A stretch of 64,000 nt of DNA from Chrysemys picta bellii (taxonomy: Eukaryota): contig NC_088797.1 of NCBI RefSeq assembly GCF_011386835.1, forward strand, positions 34,410,001-34,474,000, in the 5' to 3' direction. Below are positions 1 through 12,400 of this stretch, piece by piece. Each line of letters opens with the position of its first letter. Position 1 is the stretch's first letter. The translations under genes were made by a program, and so were the position numbers. The notes under the pieces are model-generated. The model did not search any database. It had not been told where the DNA came from and saw nothing but the letters and a program-made list of their open reading frames with translations.

Positions 1-380
1 ATCCACAACAAGGAGGAAGTGGAATTGGGAGGGGTGCAAATACAAACCAGAATTAGAAGACAGGTAGAGACTTCAGTCTAAGGAAAGTTGGAAGAGACTG
101 GGGCTGTTTAGTTCAGATAAGGGACATCGGAGAGTTACACAAAATAGTAACTGGCATAGAGAAGGCAGACTGGGGACTCCATTTACCCCCAAAGTTGATG
201 CAGGAACAAAGAGACATTGAGTGAAATTAAAGAGGCAATACATTTAACACCAAAGAAAGGAAACAAGCACTGAATTAGTCTGTGGAACTCACTTCCACAA
301 GCTATGACTGGGGACAAGAGCCTAGCAGGATTCACAAAAGGGCTGGACACATCTGTGGATAATGGGAACATGTCCAGGTA
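1..380 (+). mobile_element. CR1-type LINE 3' fragment (degenerate)
   Basis: The purine-rich segment 'tgtggaactcacttccacaag...ggattcacaaaagggctggacacatctgtggataatgggaac' resembles the ORF2 end/3' UTR of reptile CR1 LINEs. Recognised from memory, not by database search. Confidence 0.6.
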
Positions 381-1307
381 TGTCAGACAGGAGAAGAGGC
401 TATAAGGGATGCAGACTCTTCAGCCTCAGGGCACAACCCAGCCCCTAAGGGAGCAGGGGGTTCCTCATGGGCAGAACATAGTCCTCCACACTGGAGTTTC
501 TTGTGCCTTCCCTTAAACCATCTGAGCCACTCCCAGAGGCAGGGCATAGGGCTGGAGAGGCACAGCTTGGGTCTGGGCTGGCAGCCCACAGGGCTGTTCC
601 ACAGACTGAAAGTTGTTGCATTTGGGGAGCTTTCCTGGCTTGCTTGCTGCAAAAAGAATTTTTTTCTCCAACTGGGGCACACACTATCCCAGGGCAGAGT
701 CCTGGGGATGCCAGCCTGCTCAAAGCCCTTGAGCCCTCCAGCTCCCCCACTTGTATCCTGTGCCCCCAGAACTCCCCTGGACCCTAACCCTGCAACCAAC
801 CTCCCCATGGTCACAGCAACCATTGCCCCTTCCCTTCCAGCATACCCCTTTGCCCCCTCACTCATGCCTCAGCCTACATATCACACCCCCAGTCCTGCAC
901 CATCACACCTCCAATTACACCATAGTTACACCAACCATAGCTTCCCCCCTTACTCCTACTCCAGCTCCCATGTTCCTCCCCGACACCCCACTCCTAACCC
1001 AGAGCCATCCCCATCCCCTTAGCTTTCCATATCCCAGTACCCCACACACCCTGCCTGTGCCCCCATCCCATACACTTAGCTCAAGTTCCCCTACTTGTAC
1101 CCCAGCTACCCATGCTCCTCTCTCTTGGCCCCCTGTACTCTTCCCTCCCCCATAATCAGCCCCTCCCGCTGAGTCACAGAGTTTAAGGCCAGATCATGTA
1201 ATCTCCTGTATATCACAGGCCACCAGCACCACCCCACCCCGCATACTAAACCCAACAATCCCTTCCCTGGCCCATGCATTCCCGCCGCCCCCCCCGCCAA
1301 CTCTCAC

Positions 1308-1496
1308 CTGTCGCTGTCCCCCTGGGACAGCCCCCGCCGGGTCCCCGATGCCCAGGGCGCTCTCCACGGTTCCCTTCTGCATTTCTCTCAGCAGTCCCAG
1401 CTCCAGGATCCCGGCCAGGCTGGCCTGAAGCCGCTCCCCGATCCGCACTCGGTCGCTCCCGGACCAGAGGGAGGGCGGCACAGCTCTGCGGGCCAT
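1308..1496 (-). CDS. DACT4: First coding exon of a DACT/Dapper-family gene, probably DACT4 (partial; further exons lie left of the window)
   Basis: The ATG at 1496 (minus) encodes MARRAVPPSLWSGSDRVRIGERLQASLAGILELGLLREMQKGTVESALGIGDPAGAVPGGQRQ (63 codons). It ends at a CAG|GTGAGA donor (GT at 1307-1306), phase 0. The core RIGERLQASLAGILELGLLREMQKGTVESAL matches the DACT N-terminal motif (human DACT1 [31 protein letters not shown]). The exon is CpG-rich. Family assignment is strong; DACT4 identity is inferred from synteny. Confidence 0.75.
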
Positions 1497-1977
1497 GAGG
1501 ACCGCCGGGGCAAGCGACACCGATCAGCGGGGTGGGGGTGGGGGCTTGCACCGGGGAAGGGACTGGGGGCGCAGCTCCTGGGGAGGTACATACACCGGGA
1601 ATAGGAAAAAAATAGAACTGGGGGCAGTGTATGCACCAGGGGCAGGATCGACTAGGCGAGGAAGGAGGTGCAGCAACCAGGACTCACCGGGTACAGCAGC
1701 TGCAGAGGGAAGTGTGCACCGCAAGCAGGAGCAGGATGCCGGGAGGGGGGTAAATTGCATGCACGGGGCAGGATGGGTGGGAGAGTAAATTACATCCACC
1801 AGCAGCAGGGGTGCTGGTAAGTCGCATGCACCGGGAGTAGGCTGGGGGATGATAAGTTGGATGCACCATGGGGGAGCTGGACGCACAGAGGCAACCCCCA
1901 GAAGCCGCCACCGGCTCCTCTTGCCAGGGACTTTCAGCACACACAGCAGCTCAAACAAAGGGGCTGGTTTTGAAAGA

Positions 1978-2019
1978 GTCACGTGGGGGCGGGGCCAAAG
2001 GCCCCGGGCTCCTGATTGG
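1978..2019. promoter_or_regulatory. Promoter module (E-box/CLEAR-like, GC box, CCAAT) between the divergent DACT-like and LC3C-like genes
   Basis: GTCACGTGGG at 1978-1987, an overlapping GGGGCGGGGC at about 1986-1995, and ATTGG (CCAAT on minus) at about 2015-2019, in a CpG-containing segment. Confidence 0.5.
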
Positions 2020-2644
2020 GTCCGACCCGGGCAAAACATTTCGTAGAACGAAGTGAGGATCAAAGGGGAGTAGACGGTAAATCCTGTATCCCCTCCCCCC
2101 CCCCCGTGCACCAGGGGGCCAAAAACCCATTAGACCCTCCCTCAAATGCACTATGGGGCAAATACCCGCAAACACACCCCGAGGGGTAAAATAACCCCAC
2201 TGCACCCCCCAGAATACAGCATAGGGGGCACAGGCCCCCATTACCCCATGGGAGGGTGAAATGCCATCCAAATCCTGCGAGGGGCCAATGTCCCCAAATC
2301 CTTCCCCCAGTGAGGGGCAGATTCTCCCCCAAATATAGCCCCAGCTCCCTTGGGGACAGGTCACTTCCCCATGCCCCGGACCAGCGACACCTCCCATAGC
2401 AGCCCCGGGCCCGACCCCACCTTGGCCGGCGGGGGGAGTGGGCCTTGGGAGTGACTGTGAGTCCGTGCCTGGGCTTGTTCGTCCATTCTCTCTCCCCCTC
2501 TTCCACCCCGGGGCCCAGCCATGTGGGCTCCTGCTTGCGGCTCTTTACGGAGCCAGGCAAAGGGATTCAATAACCATGCGGCCGAATTCCCCTCTAGCCG
2601 CTGGACGTGCATGGGGTGTCGGAGGTGGGGGCACCGCAGGGGGC

Positions 2645-2930
2645 AGGGGCAACTAATACACCTCCCTCTTTATCGCACATCCATGGGTGGCGGGGACAAT
2701 TAACAGATCCCCCTCTATCCCCATCATAGGGGGCAATTAACTGACCCCTCTACCATAGAGAGCAGGGGTAATTAACAGACTCCTCTCTACCCCCCATCCA
2801 TGTGGGGCATGGGCAATTAACAAGACCCCTCGGCCCCTCTGTTCCCCCATCTTAGAGGACAGGGGCAATTAACAGATAACCGCTTCCATCCCCATCATGG
2901 GGGGGGGGTACAGTTAACAGACTCCCTCTT
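2645..2930. repeat. Degenerate minisatellite (35-52 bp units) with core GGGGCAATTAACAGA
   Basis: (C/T)AATTAAC at 2697, 2734, 2769, 2814 and 2866, with variants at about 2650 and 2911. Most copies are followed by a CCCCTCT..CCCCATC tract. Confidence 0.8.
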
Positions 2931-3139
2931 CTCTGAGCAGAAGCAAAATCAGCCCATAGAGAAGAAAAACCCTCCCCCCGCTTCAGTGCCCTGCTCCCCA
3001 CCAGGAGCCCCCAGTCCCGTCAGGGCCCTTGCGCTCCCCAGTAGCAGCAGGGACCTGGCCTTAGGGATTCCCCCGCGGGCGGGGCGAGTTGCAGGGGGAT
3101 CCTGCTGCAGCTGGAGCAGCGCTGCGGCGCAAGCGGCGC

Positions 3140-3147
3140 TATTTAAA
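3140..3147 (+). promoter_or_regulatory. TATA-like box of the LC3C-like gene
   Basis: TATTTAAA 50 nt upstream of the ATG at 3190, in GC-rich context. Confidence 0.55.
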
Positions 3148-3189
3148 GGGCTCCGGGGGGTAGGCGAGCCCCGCTCAGCACCCTGCAAG

Positions 3190-4681
3190 ATGCTGCCAGT
3201 TACCAGCAACCGGGAGCCCCGCGCTCCCTTCAAGCAGCGGAAATGCTTCGGTGAGAGAGGAGCCCCTGGGCGGGTCCCTGCAGGGAGAGACTGGTTAATT
3301 CGAGGGTAGGGCGTCCCCTGTGGGGAAGCCCCTGGGCGGACCTCGGGGTGCCCTGCCCTCTTCCCCTCTGTGGGCTCGGAGCGGAGAGCCCCCCCGCCCC
3401 AGGAGCTAAACAAGGGGGCTGGACTGGAGCTCCCCCTGCATCTGGGGTGCGGGGAGACCTGCTCCGGGCTGGCTGCCTGTCCCTGCCCCACCCCCGGCGG
3501 GGGGCCGGCCCGGCCCGGATGGTCCGTCTGAGTATCCAGATCTCAAAGGGTGCTGCCCGCGCGGGGTCTCTCACGATTTTCAGGGGTCTCTGCTGGGGGA
3601 AGCCTTGGCTCGGCCCCCGTGACTGTGACCCTCCTTCCCGGGTCCGCTTCTCATTCCAGCTACTAGGAAACGCGAAGTAGCCGCGGTCCGCTCCAAGTTC
3701 CCCAGCAAACTCCCGGTGAGTGGGCAGGGCGACCGCTTGGCGGGAGGAGGTAGGGCGTGGGGGGCGCTTAGCGTGTAGCCTGGGGCCAAGGACACCAGCC
3801 ACTGCGTGGGAAATAGTCCCTCACCTCTTCTCTTCCCCCCCCCCACTCCGCAGGTGCAGGGAAAGGGTTGGGGGGGGGTGCCCATCTCAGCAGCGTGGCC
3901 TCAGGGAGGGGTGCTGCCTCCCTCCCTTTCCCACGTGTCTGTTTTCCAGGTGATCCTGGAGCGGTACCCCAAGGAAAAGGTGCTGCCAGCATTGGATAGA
4001 ACCAAGTTCCTGGTCCCTCAGGAGCTGACCATGGGGCAGTTTGTGACCATTATCCGGTAAGAGAAGAGAGGAGGTGTGTGATTGGAGGTGGGGGTCTGGC
4101 TTGGTATTGCACCCTTGGTGTCTGTGCCCCAGGTGCTGCTTCTGTCTCTGACCTGAGACACCATAGGGGGGGTGCTGTGACCTGGGCAGTCATTAGCCCC
4201 CTTAGGATGCCCCTGGCTGTGTTTCAGGGGTGCCATACAGCTTTGGGAGAGGTGCTACCAAAGGCTAATGCAGAGACTGCAGCTCTCTGAACAGCCCTTT
4301 CTTGTTCCAGGATGCCCTGGGTAGGGGACCCCTGTTCTCCTTGGCTGCTGTTGTGGGTTAAGTGCAGGGGTGGCTGTGAGCAAGTACAGGCAATGCCCAG
4401 GTAGTGCAGTTCCCCCCTGGGCAAGGCAGGCAGTGGGTGCTCTCAGGGGAGACCAGTCAGTGCTTTCCCTTCTTACCTTCAGATGGGACTCAGCTCTCCT
4501 GCCTTCTTGCTTCTCCAGGAACAGGATGGCCCTCAGCTCTACCCAGTCGTTCTACTTGCTGGTGGATGGTAGCCGGAGCCTGGTCAGCATGTCACTCACC
4601 ATGACTGAGGTGTACACACTAAACCGAGATGAGGACGGGTTCCTCTACATGACCTACGCCTCCCAGGAGATGTTTGGCTAA
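3190..4681 (+). CDS. MAP1LC3C-like: MAP1LC3C-like ATG8-family protein, 4 exons, 128 aa
   Basis: Exons 3190-3250, 3660-3715, 3950-4056 and 4519-4681, all GT-AG and phase-consistent (387 nt). Protein: [128 protein letters not shown]. The motifs [16 protein letters not shown] and SLVSMS are LC3C-type. Confidence 0.93.
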
Positions 4682-6078
4682 GGCCACTGGTTGCCTCGGA
4701 CTCCTGGTCTTCTGAGAGGAGCCATTCTTGCCCATTCTAATGTTGCTGCTTGGTAAATGGTGTCATCCCACCCCCTCCGGTCAGAGTAGGAATGATATTC
4801 CTACCTGGCCAGTGGGGCATCTACCCTGGTGTGCTGAGATGCCAAGGAACCTGCCCATTTCCTTCCTTCCCCAGGTGGGTGCCTGGGTAGACTTGCTTCA
4901 AAGGGAAAGATCTGACTCCAGAGTGAGGGCCCCTTTAGCTCAGAGCAAGTGCTTTCACCCTGTGTCATGCGGTGCCCATGGGATGGTCCTTTCTGTGTTG
5001 TGGGGATAGTCACACCCACCAGTCTCTTGCACTGGTGCCAGTGTGATTCTCTCACCCCCCCCCCCGTGAGACCAATAGGACCCCATTGCTTAAGGGGTGG
5101 TGTTGTAGGACACTGCTCAGTGCTGGCTCCGAGTTCCTGCTGCACCACCTGGGGCTGCTAAAGCCCAGCCTGTTCCCTCTGACCTTGGGATAGAACTCTC
5201 ATGGTAGTAGCTTTTGGAATAAGAGGAAGTAAACTTATCTTCCAGCAACTTTCCTAGCCCCAATGCTGACCCACTGGAGACCCTTCACCTCCCTGAACAG
5301 GGGTGAACCTCCTCCTCGAGGGCAGCCCTAGCTGTGGGGTAGACTGGTTCTCTTGTAAGGGAGGTTGAGTGGTGCAGGAGGGAAGGTAATCCTGCACATG
5401 GAATAAGCGTGGTCTGTCCTTTAGACTGCACATGTGTTCTCTTTAGAAGCATACCCTGTAACCACTAGTTAACCGTTAAACATGTTTCTGTAAATGCTTG
5501 TCTGTGTGAAATGGGACTGGCAATCCAATCCAGCATGGCTAAGCCACTGCAGTTGCTGAGAGTAATGACTGCACTGAGAGCTCCCCTGCCAGGTGCAAGC
5601 AGCTCATGCCACCAGTCAGTAGAGAGGCCTGAGGGGAGTGCACTAGTTACAGCTGTATTTAGAGCACATGGTCCCTTGGGCCTGTTATCTTGGTGCAAAT
5701 AACCTGTCCTGGATGGGAGGTTCTGTGCTGTGGTAACCCTGTCCTGGACCCACAACTGCTTAGCAGGCCCCAGTCTGAGCATTGTTTAGCTGGTGTGGTG
5801 TACTTTCCTCTCCAGTGCTGCGTAAAAGCTCTTGGATGCCGTGCTGGAAGCCTGTCTTCATTTCAGACAGATTACAGGCTGCTTTCTGCTGGCGGCTGTC
5901 ACTGATTCGGCAGTGGGCAAAGGAAAGCTGGGTTAAAAAGGCCTGTGTTATCTAAGCACCCAAAGCTTCTAAAGGTGTAGAGCAGGAGGGGGCTGAGATA
6001 GCAGCTAGTGTCTTTCCTGCTCCCTACAACGTGTGCATATACCAGGACCTCTCCTTCCATTGCTGCTGGGAAGACTGA

Positions 6079-6084
6079 TTTATT
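6079..6084 (-). terminator. Candidate polyadenylation signal for ZBTB3
   Basis: TTTATT on plus (AATAAA on minus), about 2.3 kb downstream of the ZBTB3 stop. Confidence 0.35.
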
Positions 6085-8382
6085 GCAGGGAGGGGAAGCA
6101 TCTGTTCTCATGTTCTGGGAACATGCTCGAGGAGGCTGGAGCATCCACTAAATAGGCAGTTCCTGTTCTGTACCCTGCTCTGGAGTCCCAGTCTGTTGAT
6201 TGCAGAGACTCCTGCACCAGACAGATGTAAAGAGGGACTTGGAACTGTGTGTGAGAATTTTTCCTCTTCAGAGTTGAGGGGAGTAGAAAAATTTCTTCCT
6301 GATTCTCACTTTCCTACAAATTAATTCTCATCTGGGTGGGAGTTCTGCCCCTAGTACAAAGCACCTTGGAGGCCCCCTTTCCATGGCACAAGAGTGATCT
6401 TCTTGTGCTGCTTCTGGAGTCTGGCTAAGGCAGGTAGGTGCACAGCAGTTTGAAGCTGGAAATCCCATCAGAAGGGGGGGCTTTAAGGGTCTCCCCTCTG
6501 GAGTTGGCCAGAAGCCTGGGTTTGTCCCCCTCCGCTCACCTCATTCTTCTCATGCTATTCTTAGCAGGGTTGAGTAAACTATGGAATCTCTCCTCAACCA
6601 GCCCTTGTGAGTGGGGCTTGGTGCTGTTCATCTCTAAGGCCCTGCTCCAGACCAACAGTGGCTAAATGACCATATCACCCCACCAAGGGGGTTGCCTCAG
6701 GCCAACTGCCTGTGTAATAAGGTAGGAGCCACAAAGACTGAACTCCCTCCTCCACTGTAGGAGTGAATCATGCAGGTTGCGCTGCCGCAGCCTGTCCTGC
6801 AGATAAAGGGACTTCTTTGTCGGCCTGAGCCAGAGAGGCCAGAGCTGCAGTGGAGCTGACCCCTCTAATGACACCAAAACGTGCTGGAGAGAAGACCACA
6901 GCACAGACAGCAGAAGCACTTGGTGCTAGTTTTACTATTGAACTTTTGTCCTGGGCAGTGACCCCAACTCCCGGCTTTGTACAGAAATGAGTCCTAGAAG
7001 CACTTTCACTCTGGGCTTTATATTTAGAGGATCAAATGATGAGTCAGATAAAAGATGGCTGCTCTGGGCTGTTGGGTTTGGTAGGTGGAGAAGGGCTGAT
7101 ATGAGGACAGTTTAGCAGCACAGCAGCTTCTGGAGTCTGTCCCTCCTGCTGCATTCACTGCTGGGGCAGTGTGGGGGAACAAAGATGTATTGACTGGGAG
7201 GGGCAACTTGAGCTTAAAGAGCTAGGGCCATGGGGTGGTCTTGAGCAGTCAGGGGCCCAAATACTGCCATAACACTAAAAACAATAGGAATCAAACTCTT
7301 AGCCTGGAACCTTAGGAGGGTTTTCACAAGCAGGTTTCTTGGCTGTAGGCGTTGTCTACCAATCTGCCCTTGCGCCCAAAAGCTCAACAGTTAGCAGCAC
7401 AGACAAAACTGGTACAAACCATTCCATGCAAATAACCCACCTTTCACCTTTTTGTCCCTTCCTGGGTGGTTTGCAGAAGGGCTAGTTGGCCCTAACGTCT
7501 CATAGCTGCTGGGAACTTAGCCTCTGGGATGTTGGGCTACTCCCTGCTCATTCCTGGGGGGCTGGAAGGGCCACAACCATTGGTGGGAAACCATTTTTTT
7601 TTAAAACTCACTTTATATCCTCTTGAAAAGAGAACCATGATTTACTTAAAAATACAACCCTAAAAGCAGAGCCTCTGTCTAAGGGGGATTAAGATGAATG
7701 AGAGTAACCTTCAAGGAGAGTGTGTCTGTCTGGGCATAAGTATTTATGCCAAGTTAAAAATAACCAAGAGAAGGGGTAGCGCTGGGAGTGGATGGTGGGG
7801 GAAGTGAAGGTTGTGTGTCTGCTCAAACTCACTCTGAAGCAATCACTCTAAACCCCTCTCTGTGAAGAGCTCCTGCCCAGGGTGGTAATAACCCTGACAG
7901 TCAGATACTGTCCTGGGTCTGACCTCCCACCTGCTGTGACCCACTCTGAGCATAAATATATGTGGAAGTGTTTCCTGGTTAGAATTTAAATTATTCTGAT
8001 CAATGCAGCTATTTCCAAACTATTTACAAAGCTGGCAGCAGTCCAAGGGGGGAAAGGCCAGTGTAGTGTGCCCAGCACAGGTCTACCCTGTATAAGAAAT
8101 GACAGTGACTCCTTCCGGCAGGCAGGGAGGTGGTACATGTGGCTTGGGCAGGAAGACAACTGATCAAGGGCATGAACCAGAGCAGCTGCTGGTTTGGAGT
8201 GAGGCCCCTGTTTCTATGGTCGCTGTGGCTCCTGATTAGAGTTCAAAATTCCCTGCTAGCATCTGGGGGGGCCTCACCACACCTCCAACCCATTTCTACA
8301 GGAGAGAATCCAAAGGCTTCCCCTGTACTGCTGAGGAGCGTCCGGCTTGTCCTAGATCCCTGGGTGGGGTAGATGTGGTTCA

Positions 8383-9780
8383 CTACGAGGGGTTCTCCAC
8401 GTCCTGTTTACAGCGCTTGGCTGCCAGGTCTTCATTGTGGGCCTTGCGGATGTGCCTGTACAGGTCCCCAGACTGGGTGTAGCTCCGCATGCAGTAGCGG
8501 CACTCATAGGGGCGCTCGCGCGTGTGCACAGTGGCATGGCGCCGCAGTGTGTAGGAGCAGGAGAAGGTCTTGCCGCACGTCTTGCAGGTGGGGACGTCCT
8601 CAGTGAAGATACCGAAGTTGGGGTGTGCCTCGTACTCTGGCAGGTACATCTGCTCATGCAGCGGTGGTGTCACCATGTTGGAGTAGCCCTGTCCACCCGG
8701 CACTGGGATCATGTGGTAGGGGAGATGCTCCTGTGGAAGGAAGCCGCCCTCTGAGGACACCTCCTCTATGCCACCAGGCTCCTCAAAGCCATCGGGGTGG
8801 CGACTGCAGCCCCCAGCTGGCCCCACCTCCACTGTGGGCCTCTGGAAGATGCTCTCCATCCTCATTTCCATGCTCCGCCTCTCCAGCTGCTCCACTGTGT
8901 CCGGCTCCTCGTCAGAGATCACAATGGCTTCCACCTTCACTTTGATGGGACCCCTGTCCAGCTCCTTGGGGTAGAAGCCATCTAAGTTGCCCACCCGTGG
9001 CTCCACGGCTAAGCTCTCAGGGATGGTTTCCAGGCCGGATGGTGCCTCTGCCACATTGCCTGGGGGAAAGTAGCTGTGGGAGATGGTTTCGGTGGAGCTG
9101 CTGGGGCTGGACAGGGAAACGTCTGCAGTGACTGGGGGGAGAGGCCTACCCAAGACAGGGCCACGGGGGGAGTCGCCCTCCATGCCTGGCTGGGTAGTAT
9201 CTGCCATGTCTGCAGTTGGTGCTGGAGGCTGCTGGGGGCCTGCTTTCTCCAAGGGGTTATTCTTCCACTCCTCCTTCTTGTTCTTTCCTGCCTCACACAG
9301 ATGCAGAGGTGGTGGCAGGACCTCAGGGCTCTGCAGCTGGCACTTGGAGGTGCTGGGCAGGAACTCAGAGCTGGCTGGGGAGTCCTCCTCCTTCTTAGTG
9401 CTGTCAGCCTCTGCCAGTGCCCGTGCCTGCAGCTTCTTCTTGCAGACCTTGACAATGTCATTCATGTGCAGGTAGCTTGCAGCAGCCAGCACATCCTCCA
9501 CTGGAGTGTCATTGAAGGCCAGCATGCCCTGGTACATGAACTCCAGCAGCAGCCCGAAGGCTGGTGCTGTGACAATCTCATTGTTGATGCAGACCAGATC
9601 CCGCTTGTCCAGCCGCTCCTTGTAGAACATGTGGAAGAAGGTGCTGCAGGAGGCCAGCACGGCCCGGTGTGCTAGGAACTGGGTGTTGCCCACCATGATG
9701 GTGCAGTCGCAGAGGAAGCCCTGGTGTCGCTGCTCTCGCAGGCTCTGCAGCAAGTGCTTACTGTGGTCAGGGAACTCCAT
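8383..9780 (-). CDS. ZBTB3: Zinc finger and BTB domain-containing protein 3, single coding exon, 465 aa
   Basis: N-terminal BTB domain [26 protein letters not shown]...[14 protein letters not shown] closely matches human ZBTB3. Two C-terminal C2H2 fingers ([21 protein letters not shown]; [22 protein letters not shown]). A splice acceptor (cttcag|cATG) lies immediately upstream. Confidence 0.96.
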
Positions 9781-10799
9781 GCTGAAGGGAGGTCAGGAGG
9801 ATGGAGCAGCAGTTGGCATAACCCTGAGCCCCCTGGGAGTGGGGGGGGAGAGAGAGAATCAGAGTTACCTTGCAGATGAAGGGGGTAAGGAAACATCCCT
9901 TCCCCACTAGACTGCCCCATAAGGGGCCCATCCCTCATGCTTCATATCTGTCCCCTTGCTGCCTCAGTCTGAGCTCCGTTCCTTCTTGGGCTCTACTGGG
10001 GCCTCACTTGCCCTGCACCTTTCATTATCTGTCCCTTACCCGCCCCCATCCCTTTCCCCTTCAGCCTGTTCCATTGTGGGCCCTCACACCTCATGTTGAG
10101 CCTCTCTATTCCCCTCCCGCTGCAAAGTGCCCTATCCAGAATCTCCTCTTCCTGTGGGCTACAGTAGCCAGAAGCCCCTACTCCCATCATCCCCCTAGGC
10201 AGGGCCCCCGCCCCAGGGTCAGGCTAGAAGCTGGTGCCCCCCAATATTCCCCAGCATTGGCTGTTGGCTAGAGCAGGCATCCCCCATTCTAGCATGGGTG
10301 GCGTGTGTTAACATGGCCCTGTCTCACCTTCCCCTAGTGACCCTGAGATGGGAGAGGAGCCTGCAGGGGTGTTAACCTGGGAGGGGAGAGGGCTGGCGTG
10401 GGGGTCTCTGCTCTAGGGATGGGGCCTGGGTGGGGAAGCCTGGGCAGGGAGGAGGTGGTTGCCCCCCACATTACAGCAGAAACTAGGCGAGGGGCACTTG
10501 GGGGTCCCAGGGGAGGGAGGTCAGGCCAGGGCTGCTCGGAGGGGGGGCAGGCAGAGGGCTGATTGGGGGGTGGGAGGAGCCGGGCTCAGGGGGATCCTGG
10601 TTTAGGGGGCTAGGGCCAGAGAGCGCCTGTCTCAGTTGGGGGGAGCTGGGCCGGGGGGTCCCGGTGGGGGGGGGGAGGGGCCGGTTCTGGTCCCGCGTGA
10701 GGGGAGCGGGGAGGGGCACGTTCTGGTCCCGCATGAGGGGAGCGGGGCCGGGGGGATCCCGGTGCGGGGGGAGGCGAGGGCGACTAGTCCCGGCTCAGG

Positions 10800-12400
10800 G
10801 GGTTCTTTGCCCCCTAGTCCCCACATCCCCACTCACCACAAAGCCGCGGCCTGAAAGGATCCGCCTACTCCCGCCCCCTGCTGCCTGCCTGTGCCACTTC
10901 TCCAACCTCTGCTGCTTGATTGGCTCGGAATCACTGTCAGTCTCCGGTTTCCCCCGAAGATTGGATACCGGCCGCTGTCATTCAATCTCCATTCCTGTCG
11001 ATTAGTTTGAAGCGCCCGTCCATCAACTCGACTCATCAGTTGATTGGTTTCCCATAAAATGTCACGCTCACGCTCTGCCCGCTGACTGGCCGCAGAAAGA
11101 TATTCCTCAGCCCTTCAGCCATCTCAACAGGCACTGGTCAGACCCGGGTCCTCCTAATGATTGGTCAACGCCCTGGTGTCACTCCACCAGCCCCGTCTGG
11201 TGATTGGTGGGATAACTTAGCCCTCCATTTCGTGTGGGGGCGGGACGTCGGTCTCCATAGTAGCCGATGAGGGGTGTGCGTGAGGGAGAGGCGGGGTGAG
11301 CGCCGCGGGAGCTATACTGTGTTCTCTCGGGGTTGGGCGGCAGAGCAGAAAGTTTGTTTTCTTGTTATTTGTTCGCTGCGATCCCTCAGCCGTGTTCCCC
11401 TCCCCGCCCTGCGCTCCTCACCCTGGCGGGGCGGGGTGGGGTCTCCTCCCCCCTCGGGGTGTCCGTGAAAGTCCCCTCGGGCACCAGGCAGCGGGAGGCA
11501 GCCGATACCCGACGGAGTGTCCCGGCCCCTCCGTAGGGGTTCTTGCTCCCCTCCCCCGGGCTGCGGCAGCCGAGGGGCGCCTCCCGCTATGGCCCGGCTC
11601 GGGCTCGTGGCGCCTGTCCCCGGAGGGCAGGGAGTCGGCCGCCAGGGGGAGCCGCGCCGCGGGCACGGGCCGGCGCGTTGCCAGCTGTCATTTCAAACCA
11701 GCCCCGGGGTTTGAATGTCAACGGGCGCGGGAGCCGGGCCCGCCTCTTCCTTCCCCGCCACTCGCCCGCCCGGCATGAGGAGACGGGGGTCGCTGCGCGC
11801 GGGGACTCCCGTGAGGCGCTCCACGCGCCTGGCGCAGAGTAGCGCGGAGGAGACGGTGAGAGCAGGGGGCGCCCCCGCGGGGGGCTTCGAGGGGGCGGGG
11901 AGCCCCGCGGGTCGGGCTGGGCGGCCCCGGCTCTGAGCGCGGCCGTTGCCGCCCAGGCCCTCAGCGGCTTTTAGGGGCTGGGGGGCAGGCTCCGGCCGGC
12001 GCGGCGCCCCCCGACCCAGCCAGCACCACGGCCCCGCGGGGCGCCTCCCCAACCCGGCCGGCGCGTTCGGCTGAGAACTCTGCCCCCCGAGCAACCTGGC
12101 ACTCGGAGCTCGGCCTGCGGGGCCAGCAATGCCGGGGCTCCTCCCCCCCCAGCTGGTGCCGCTCGGTGGGTGACGCGCGCGGTCCGAGGGTTTGTCATCG
12201 CGCCAGGACCCCCGAGCGCTGGGCAAGGGCAGAACAGGAAGAGGGGCCCGGGCAAGAAAGAGGCAAGTTGTGGAAAAGCTGCGCTGCTCTAGGCTGTGCC
12301 TGCCCGACAGCACCGCGGCACCGGTGCATGCAGCTCCCCTGCTGTGAGTGACATCCCCGCTTGCTTCAGCGCTGCGTGGGGTTCCACCGAATGGCTGGGT
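10800..12400. promoter_or_regulatory. CpG island with bidirectional promoter for ZBTB3 (-) and the PLD3-like gene (+)
   Basis: Very high CpG density. ATTGG (CCAAT) at 10919, 10960, 11043, 11160 and 11203, and a GC box GGGGGCGGGAC at about 11236-11246. Outward-facing splice donors at 10836 (-), 11296 (+) and 11856 (+). Confidence 0.75.
10837..10900 (-). other. ZBTB3: Probable non-coding first exon of ZBTB3 (5' boundary approximate)
   Basis: Minus-strand donor TGTG|GTGAGT (plus-strand 'actcaccaca' at 10831-10840) at the edge of the CpG island. It pairs with the acceptor at 9783-9782. Confidence 0.55.

Follow-up and report, generated by a model that had tools for sequence, protein, structure and literature searches.

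Exon 1 of the painted turtle DACT4 gene: paralogue identity, splicing and genomic setting of a known but inconsistently named Dapper family member

Four paralogues of the Dapper (DACT) family have been defined in gnathostomes, and their sequence motifs catalogued, by Schubert, Sobreira, Janousek, Alvares and Dietrich (2014, BMC Evol Biol 14:157; PMC4236578). The fourth, Dact4, carries in their compilation a motif 1 of the form SLWSG-T/S-E/D-RVRIGERL-K/Q-A-T/S-LAG-V/I/L-LELEL (Additional file 9 of PMC4236578), and the Dact2 counterpart reads DR-x-RVGERLQAALAGLQEL. Motif 1 was assigned by the same authors to a region involved in Alk5 blocking and was predicted to be a nuclear export signal. Dact4 loci were found always to have Ttc9 as a linked gene, in most cases Map1lc3c as well, and in sarcopterygians also Zbtb3; in this last group Map1lc3c is linked with Zbtb3. 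Teleost Dact4 proteins were reported to have repetitive inserts that are specific to teleosts, and birds and amphibians were stated to have lost the gene. Dact4 was further predicted neither to dimerise through a zipper nor to bind the PDZ domain of Dvl, from which grew an 'anti-Dact' hypothesis in which Dact4 may sequester the partners of other DACT proteins. A Dact4 gene of the painted turtle, Chrysemys picta bellii, was given on scaffold JH584543 (PMC4236578).

We analysed a stretch of 64,000 nucleotides of painted turtle DNA, hereafter the window. With a probability of about 0.93, the minus-strand segment 1949..1308 is exon 1 of painted turtle DACT4, the fourth gnathostome Dapper/DACT paralogue, and consists of a leader of ~450 nt and 63 codons. 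The gene is already known, being annotated in RefSeq and published in 2014, and its presence here is not a discovery. All 63 encoded residues (63/63) are identical to the start of the painted turtle protein XP_005289338.3, 'dapper homolog 2-like isoform X3' (UniProt A0A8C3HY88). A preliminary description of this DNA had called the exon hidden. This is correct for a prokaryote-style list of open reading frames, where the exon is part of a 108-aa frame that runs into the intron, and incorrect for the databases and the literature, where it is exon 1 of XP_005289338.3 and A0A8C3HY88 and belongs to the painted turtle Dact4 of PMC4236578. We find that the two are the same gene, with nothing essential different. 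Common to both are motif 1 with its SLWSG prefix, a motif 2a left incomplete where exon 1 closes, a locus linked to Map1lc3c, Zbtb3 and Ttc9, and motif 6, and in neither is there a leucine zipper or an MTTV tail. The case indicates that a eukaryotic first exon can be recognised, and its paralogue correctly named, from sequence alone. New in the present work are RNA evidence that joins exon 1 to exon 2 and a NAGNAG splice variant at this junction.

The closest relative within the family is DACT2 (Dapper2 or Frodo-related), which antagonises Alk5 and Dvl and is the sister paralogue that arose when the vertebrate genome was duplicated for the second time. DACT2 and turtle DACT4 both belong to the Pfam Dapper family and share the motif-1 core RxGERLxAxLAGLxEL as well as motifs 2d, 2e, 3c and 4b. 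Unlike turtle DACT4, DACT2 has a PDZ-binding tail and a sixfold leucine zipper that begins where exon 1 closes (RLEATLTALKEQL). It possesses neither motif 6 nor the SLWSG prefix, and it resides at another locus. DACT1 (Dapper1/Frodo) shares the family, the four-exon plan and an exon-1 motif-1 helix, but has RTRER-x-EATLAGL as its motif 1 and EEK...LEENILLLRKQL as the close of its exon 1, neither of which is present in turtle DACT4 exon 1. Fish proteins that have been named automatically after zebrafish si:ch211-168f7.5 fall in the same tree clade as the turtle protein, are 57-60% identical to it over exon 1, carry the SLWSG motif and are 980-1100 aa long. Presumably, si:ch211-168f7.5 is the zebrafish dact4 gene (chr14) of the 2014 paper. 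The automatic names within the orthologue group include dapper homolog 1-like, 2-like and 3-like, dapper 1-A-like, centrobin, mucin-17, flocculation protein FLO11 and si:ch211-168f7.5. Thus, public databases have no consistent DACT4 name, and the existing ones are misleading.

The coding part of the exon occupies positions 1308..1496 of the minus strand and comprises an ATG (1496-1494) and 62 further codons, the last of which is CAG (1310-1308). The frame ends in phase 0, and an in-frame TGA lies 9 codons 5′ of the ATG. Directly downstream is the GT splice donor of intron 1 (1306..1307, minus), in the context CAG followed by GTGAGA. This donor is common to Emys, and the RNA contigs break exactly at 1308/1307, in agreement with the strong phase-0 donor that had been proposed for the exon end. 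The first 1.3 kb of intron 1 fill positions 1..1305 (minus), and exons 2-4 are past the left edge of the window. A tblastn search of the window with XP_005289338.3 recovered residues 1-58, and nothing else credible was found within the 64 kb.

The preliminary description had read a DACT N-terminal helix at 1308-1496, and both the coordinates and the 63 residues that it gave are exact. The Pfam Dapper family (PF15268) matches this 63-aa peptide over profile positions 1-37 with 28.5 bits (E 1e-6), which is above the gathering cut-off of 27 bits, and a precomputed PF15268 match is also present on full-length XP_005289338.3. When the peptide was compared by HMMER with 1.84 billion representative proteins, 37 matches were obtained, the best of them being a 689-aa protein of Pelusios castaneus (E 3e-21), with 83% of positions identical between residues 1-63 of the two. 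The best matches are all of the Dact4 type, with lengths of ~700 aa in reptiles, 835 in Latimeria and 990-1100 in teleosts. Because these lengths agree with those of the Dact4 group in PMC4236578, they support the Dact4 identity of the exon. The product of the exon is motif 1 with a short tail rich in Gly and Pro, and motif 1 is a conserved N-terminal amphipathic helix. AlphaFold2, run with an alignment of 22 N-termini, models the exon as one helix spanning residues 13-48, with block-mean pLDDT values of 91-98 over residues 21-50 and with the last 15 residues disordered. Between Chrysemys and Emys the exon has 5 differences, 2 of them non-synonymous, a comparison that is too shallow for selection to be inferred.

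Evidence for the particular paralogue comes from motifs, tree, locus and splicing, which all agree on DACT4 as had been suggested. The Dact4-specific motif 1 (SLWSG...RVRIGERLQASLAGILEL) is present as an exact pattern match from residue 9 through LEL, after which the turtle has LELGL in place of the consensus LELEL. The Dact2 motif-1 pattern gave no match to the exon, and the Dact1 (RTRER-x-EATLAGL) and Dact3 forms of motif 1 are absent from it by inspection. The exon closes with ...GGQRQ, to which exon 2 contributes Q-G. At this junction RQQ is kept and V is replaced by G, so that the fit to the Dact4 form of motif 2a (the short x-QQV) is close rather than exact. No RLEATL or LEENILLL segment is found in exon 1, and no zipper leucines come from it, whereas the first zipper leucines stand at the close of exon 1 in DACT1 (LEENILLLRKQL) and DACT2 (RLEATLTALKEQL). 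Indeed, the absence of an LEENILLL-type leucine-rich segment from the exon end had been pointed out beforehand, and it means that no motif 2a of the DACT1/DACT2 type exists there.

The same picture is obtained from the full-length RefSeq product XP_005289338.3, which we used for all statements on motifs encoded by the off-window exons 2-4. This protein carries motifs 2d, 2e, 3a, 3b, 3c, 4b and 5a, and it has the Dact4-specific motif 6 (pattern R/K-I/S/T-R-R/P-RISTC) as KIRRRISTC at residue 390. Motif 2b was sought in it and was not found. Its longest strict run of L-x6 heptads is 1, compared with 6 in four DACT2 proteins. Dact4 had been described beforehand as having an 'altered' leucine zipper; the departure from other DACT proteins is real, but the zipper is absent rather than altered. 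At the C-terminus, XP_005289338.3 ends ...KASGASK, with no PDZ-binding motif of the MTTV type, whereas turtle DACT2 ends ...KVMTMV.

A tree of 45 full-length proteins of the DACT2 and Dact4 types, unrooted and built without DACT1 and DACT3, is split by a long branch with an SH-aLRT support of 100 into a DACT2 group of 11 rows that extends from chimaera to birds and turtles, and a Dact4 clade of 34 rows. The latter contains Latimeria, lungfish, sharks, ray-finned fishes, amphibians, squamates, tuatara, turtles and paleognath birds, arranged broadly as the species are related, and the painted turtle product is placed among the turtles. Pelusios, Narcine and Polyodon each contribute one gene to each of the two clades. 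Placement with DACT2, one of the outcomes that would have spoken against the original proposal, was not seen. Because the tree has no DACT1 or DACT3 outgroup, the exclusion of these two paralogues is based on the motif patterns, on PMC4236578 and on the exon-1 matches; neither DACT1 nor DACT3 is among the 37 HMMER matches, of which the names were looked up for 20.

The neighbourhood of the exon is likewise that of Dact4. An exon of a MAP1LC3C-like gene of the ATG8 family is located at 3949..4055 on the plus strand (PF02991 ATG8, E 1.2e-9; its flanking introns are skipped in RNA), and a ZBTB3-like BTB/zinc-finger gene is located at 8383..9780 on the minus strand as a single 465-aa open reading frame with a BTB domain (E 6.9e-28) and C2H2 fingers. 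DACT4 exon 1 therefore stands head-to-head with the LC3C-like gene, and the ZBTB3-like gene is next in line, as in the synteny published for Dact4. The orthologous locus of Emys orbicularis is colinear with window positions 1-11433 at 95.4% identity, and its gene order is BTB-ZnF, ATG8, Dapper and a TTC9-like TPR gene. The TTC9 side of the locus is off-window in Chrysemys and was seen in this Emys locus. Taken with the splicing data, motif 1, synteny and tree support the assignment of the exon to DACT4.

Contigs of four public runs from four studies (X1, X5, X6 and X15) were compared with window positions 1-5000. These contigs carry no level, tissue or strand. The runs are judged to be RNA because both LC3C introns, 3715-3948 and 4056-4517 (each GT..AG), are removed in them, and the strand of the DACT4 transcript is minus because of the GT donor. 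One contig per run, of 1540, 465, 2957 and 3068 nt, matches the leader and the exon down to 1308 (1307 in one run). Past the donor, the contigs continue with off-window letters, 27 of them in the 465-nt contig and from over 1,200 to 2,400 in the others. When reverse-complemented, these letters encode QGWGSLGAKE, which is residues 64-73 of XP_005289338.3. Thus, junctions leading from 1308 into exon 2, which the preliminary description had marked as the evidence to look for, are present in all four studies. The off-window exon 2 has a NAGNAG acceptor that yields two junctions, one without the first Q (Gln64) in run X1 and one with it in runs X6 and X15. The two forms are one CAG apart and correspond to RefSeq isoforms X3 (XP_005289338.3, 683 aa) and X4 (XP_042705544.2, 682 aa), whose shared name wrongly points to DACT2. 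DACT4 exon 1 is therefore transcribed and is spliced at its phase-0 donor to give the annotated 683-aa protein or the 682-aa NAGNAG variant.

Of the published four-exon plan, exon 1 lies in the Chrysemys window and the exon 1-2 junction is seen in the RNA contigs, and the intactness of exons 2-4 consequently rests on the RefSeq protein and on the Emys locus. XP_005289338.3 is an intact predicted product of 683 aa that is 81% identical to the Pelusios protein. The Emys orthologue has four intact exons, the second of which begins ~6.4 kb after the first.

These data also bear on three other ways in which the exon could be read. If the database names were taken at face value, it would be exon 1 of the turtle orthologue of DACT2. 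RefSeq and UniProt do use 'dapper homolog 2-like' and 'Dapper homolog 2', DACT2 is the nearest paralogue, and the exon is 45-54% identical to DACT2 N-termini. However, a true DACT2 of 812-817 aa exists in turtles as a gene of its own, with the zipper motifs 2a and 2b, the sixfold leucine zipper and the KVMTMV tail, and neither the turtle exon nor XP_005289338.3 contains motif 1, 2a or 2b in its Dact2 form. Likewise, the long branch that parts the two clades with a support of 100 and the Dact4-type neighbours at the locus, which are not those of DACT2, are at odds with this reading. The names themselves carry little weight, given that they are inconsistent across the Dact4 clade ('1-like', '2-like', '3-like', 'centrobin', 'mucin-17'). 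We have rejected a DACT2 orthologue on the grounds of tree, motifs, locus and the separate turtle DACT2, and consider it very improbable.

It might also be supposed that the exon is the relic of a decaying or silent gene, comparable to the mammalian locus from which Dact4 has been deleted. Dact4 has been lost repeatedly among vertebrates and evolves rapidly, and exons 2-4 are out of view in the window. Spliced transcripts of ~3 kb nevertheless use the 1308 donor in four studies, the intact 683-aa RefSeq product keeps all Dact4 motifs in addition to its conservation with the pleurodire Pelusios, and the four exons of the Emys orthologue are undamaged. Given such spliced transcripts and a product that is both intact and conserved, we reject a pseudogene relic as most unlikely. 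Least probable, to the point of being negligible, is a chance reading frame with a fortuitous Dapper-like stretch. Such an origin could be imagined because the region is GC-rich and has overlapping open reading frames on both strands, and because the Pfam Dapper score is just 1.5 bits over its cut-off. But a chance frame would not be expected to reach an E value of 3e-21 in a search of 1.84 billion proteins, to be 100% identical to an annotated protein or to have its exon boundary borne out by RNA, and the Pfam, HMMER and 63/63 RefSeq matches exclude it.

Several observations concern the distribution of DACT4 among vertebrates. Proteins of the Dact4 clade are found in ostrich, kiwi, emu and rhea (shortened to 448-558 aa), where they form a sister group to the turtle proteins on a long stem, and others are found in salamanders and caecilians. 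The ostrich (Struthio camelus) gene adjoins a TTC9-like TPR gene, an arrangement also seen in Emys. Among the matches listed there is no protein of the Dact4 clade from a neognath or a crocodilian, which is only suggestive of a loss in these two groups. Because paleognath birds, salamanders and caecilians keep Dact4-clade genes, a loss in birds and amphibians, as stated in 2014, seems too broad and would hold at most for neognaths and frogs. The loss in birds given in the preliminary description is too sweeping for the same reason, the paleognaths being the exception. The loss history of Dact4 thus needs to be revised.

No functional experiments on any Dact4 were found in the literature that we searched. 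By analogy with its family, turtle DACT4 might be a modulator of Wnt/TGF-beta signalling. Its sequence suggests a DACT-type scaffold that would not dimerise through a zipper and would have no tail by which to hold the PDZ domain of Dishevelled. It appears to keep the central region that has been linked to the binding of Tcf3 in DACT1 (motif 4b, YPSPLHAVALQSPLF), as well as the exon 1-4 region that is sufficient, in DACT2, to block Alk5. Because the zipper and the PDZ-binding tail are missing while the regions related to Tcf3 and Alk5 would remain, the most likely role of turtle DACT4 may be to compete, as a monomer, for some of the partners of DACT proteins. We adopt this 'anti-Dact' hypothesis of Schubert and co-workers with modest confidence. 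Perhaps motif 1 also doubles as a nuclear export signal; residues L23, L27, L31 and L33 of exon 1 have a hydrophobic spacing of x3-x3-x1 that fits such a signal by inspection.

It is tempting to speculate further that turtle Dact4 acts as a natural dominant-negative protein that titrates the partners of DACT1-3, having lost zipper and tail but kept the N-terminal helix, and that its pattern of retention marks lineages that differ in the buffering of Wnt/TGF-beta adaptors. We regard this extended proposal as doubtful. If it were true, such a difference would set the lineages in which Dact4 is kept (turtles, squamates, tuatara, paleognath birds, salamanders and caecilians) apart from those in which it is lost (mammals, frogs and, apparently, neognaths and crocodilians). 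The expression of DACT4 in turtle supports the use of reptile or fish models for the 'anti-Dact' idea.

Upstream of the coding part, the transcribed 5′ leader of exon 1, as far as the contigs reach, occupies 1497..1949 on the minus strand (~450 nt), with contigs running continuously from 1308 to 1836, 1937 or 1949. This leader contains five upstream ATGs, at 1869, 1827, 1795, 1760 and 1591, and the upstream frame that begins at 1591 overlaps the main DACT4 start codon. These upstream ATGs could keep the translation of DACT4 low, and the ATG-rich leader is a small new point concerning this gene.

Between the two head-to-head genes is an intergenic stretch of moderately CpG-rich DNA (1950..2719, without strand), and the contig on the LC3C side starts at 2720. 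The observed/expected CpG ratio is 0.44-0.51 over positions 1300-3800 compared with 0.08-0.14 in the flanks, and this enriched block covers the 5′ ends of both DACT4 (minus) and the LC3C-like gene (plus). Because the transcribed ends are less than 800 bp apart, the stretch is probably a shared bidirectional promoter. The LC3C-like gene has a long first exon at 2720-3714 (run X6), and the runs in which DACT4 is expressed show it as well.

A 13-mer resembling TGTTAATTGCCCC occurs in six copies, spaced 35-52 bp apart, at 2646-2874 (minus) in the DACT4/LC3C intergenic region. It has 8 matches in the window where 1.5 are expected, a number reached in 0 of 100 shuffles. Tandem Repeats Finder reported no array for positions 1-4000. 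The TAATTG core of this 13-mer, we assume, resembles a homeodomain site. Finally, the N-terminus of a 749-aa isoform X2 from Pelodiscus sinensis resembles the translation of the open reading frame 1524-2111 (minus), in the leader region 5′ of the DACT4 ATG, rather than motif 1. Judging by this resemblance, the Pelodiscus N-terminus is probably an annotation variant that starts from an upstream ATG.
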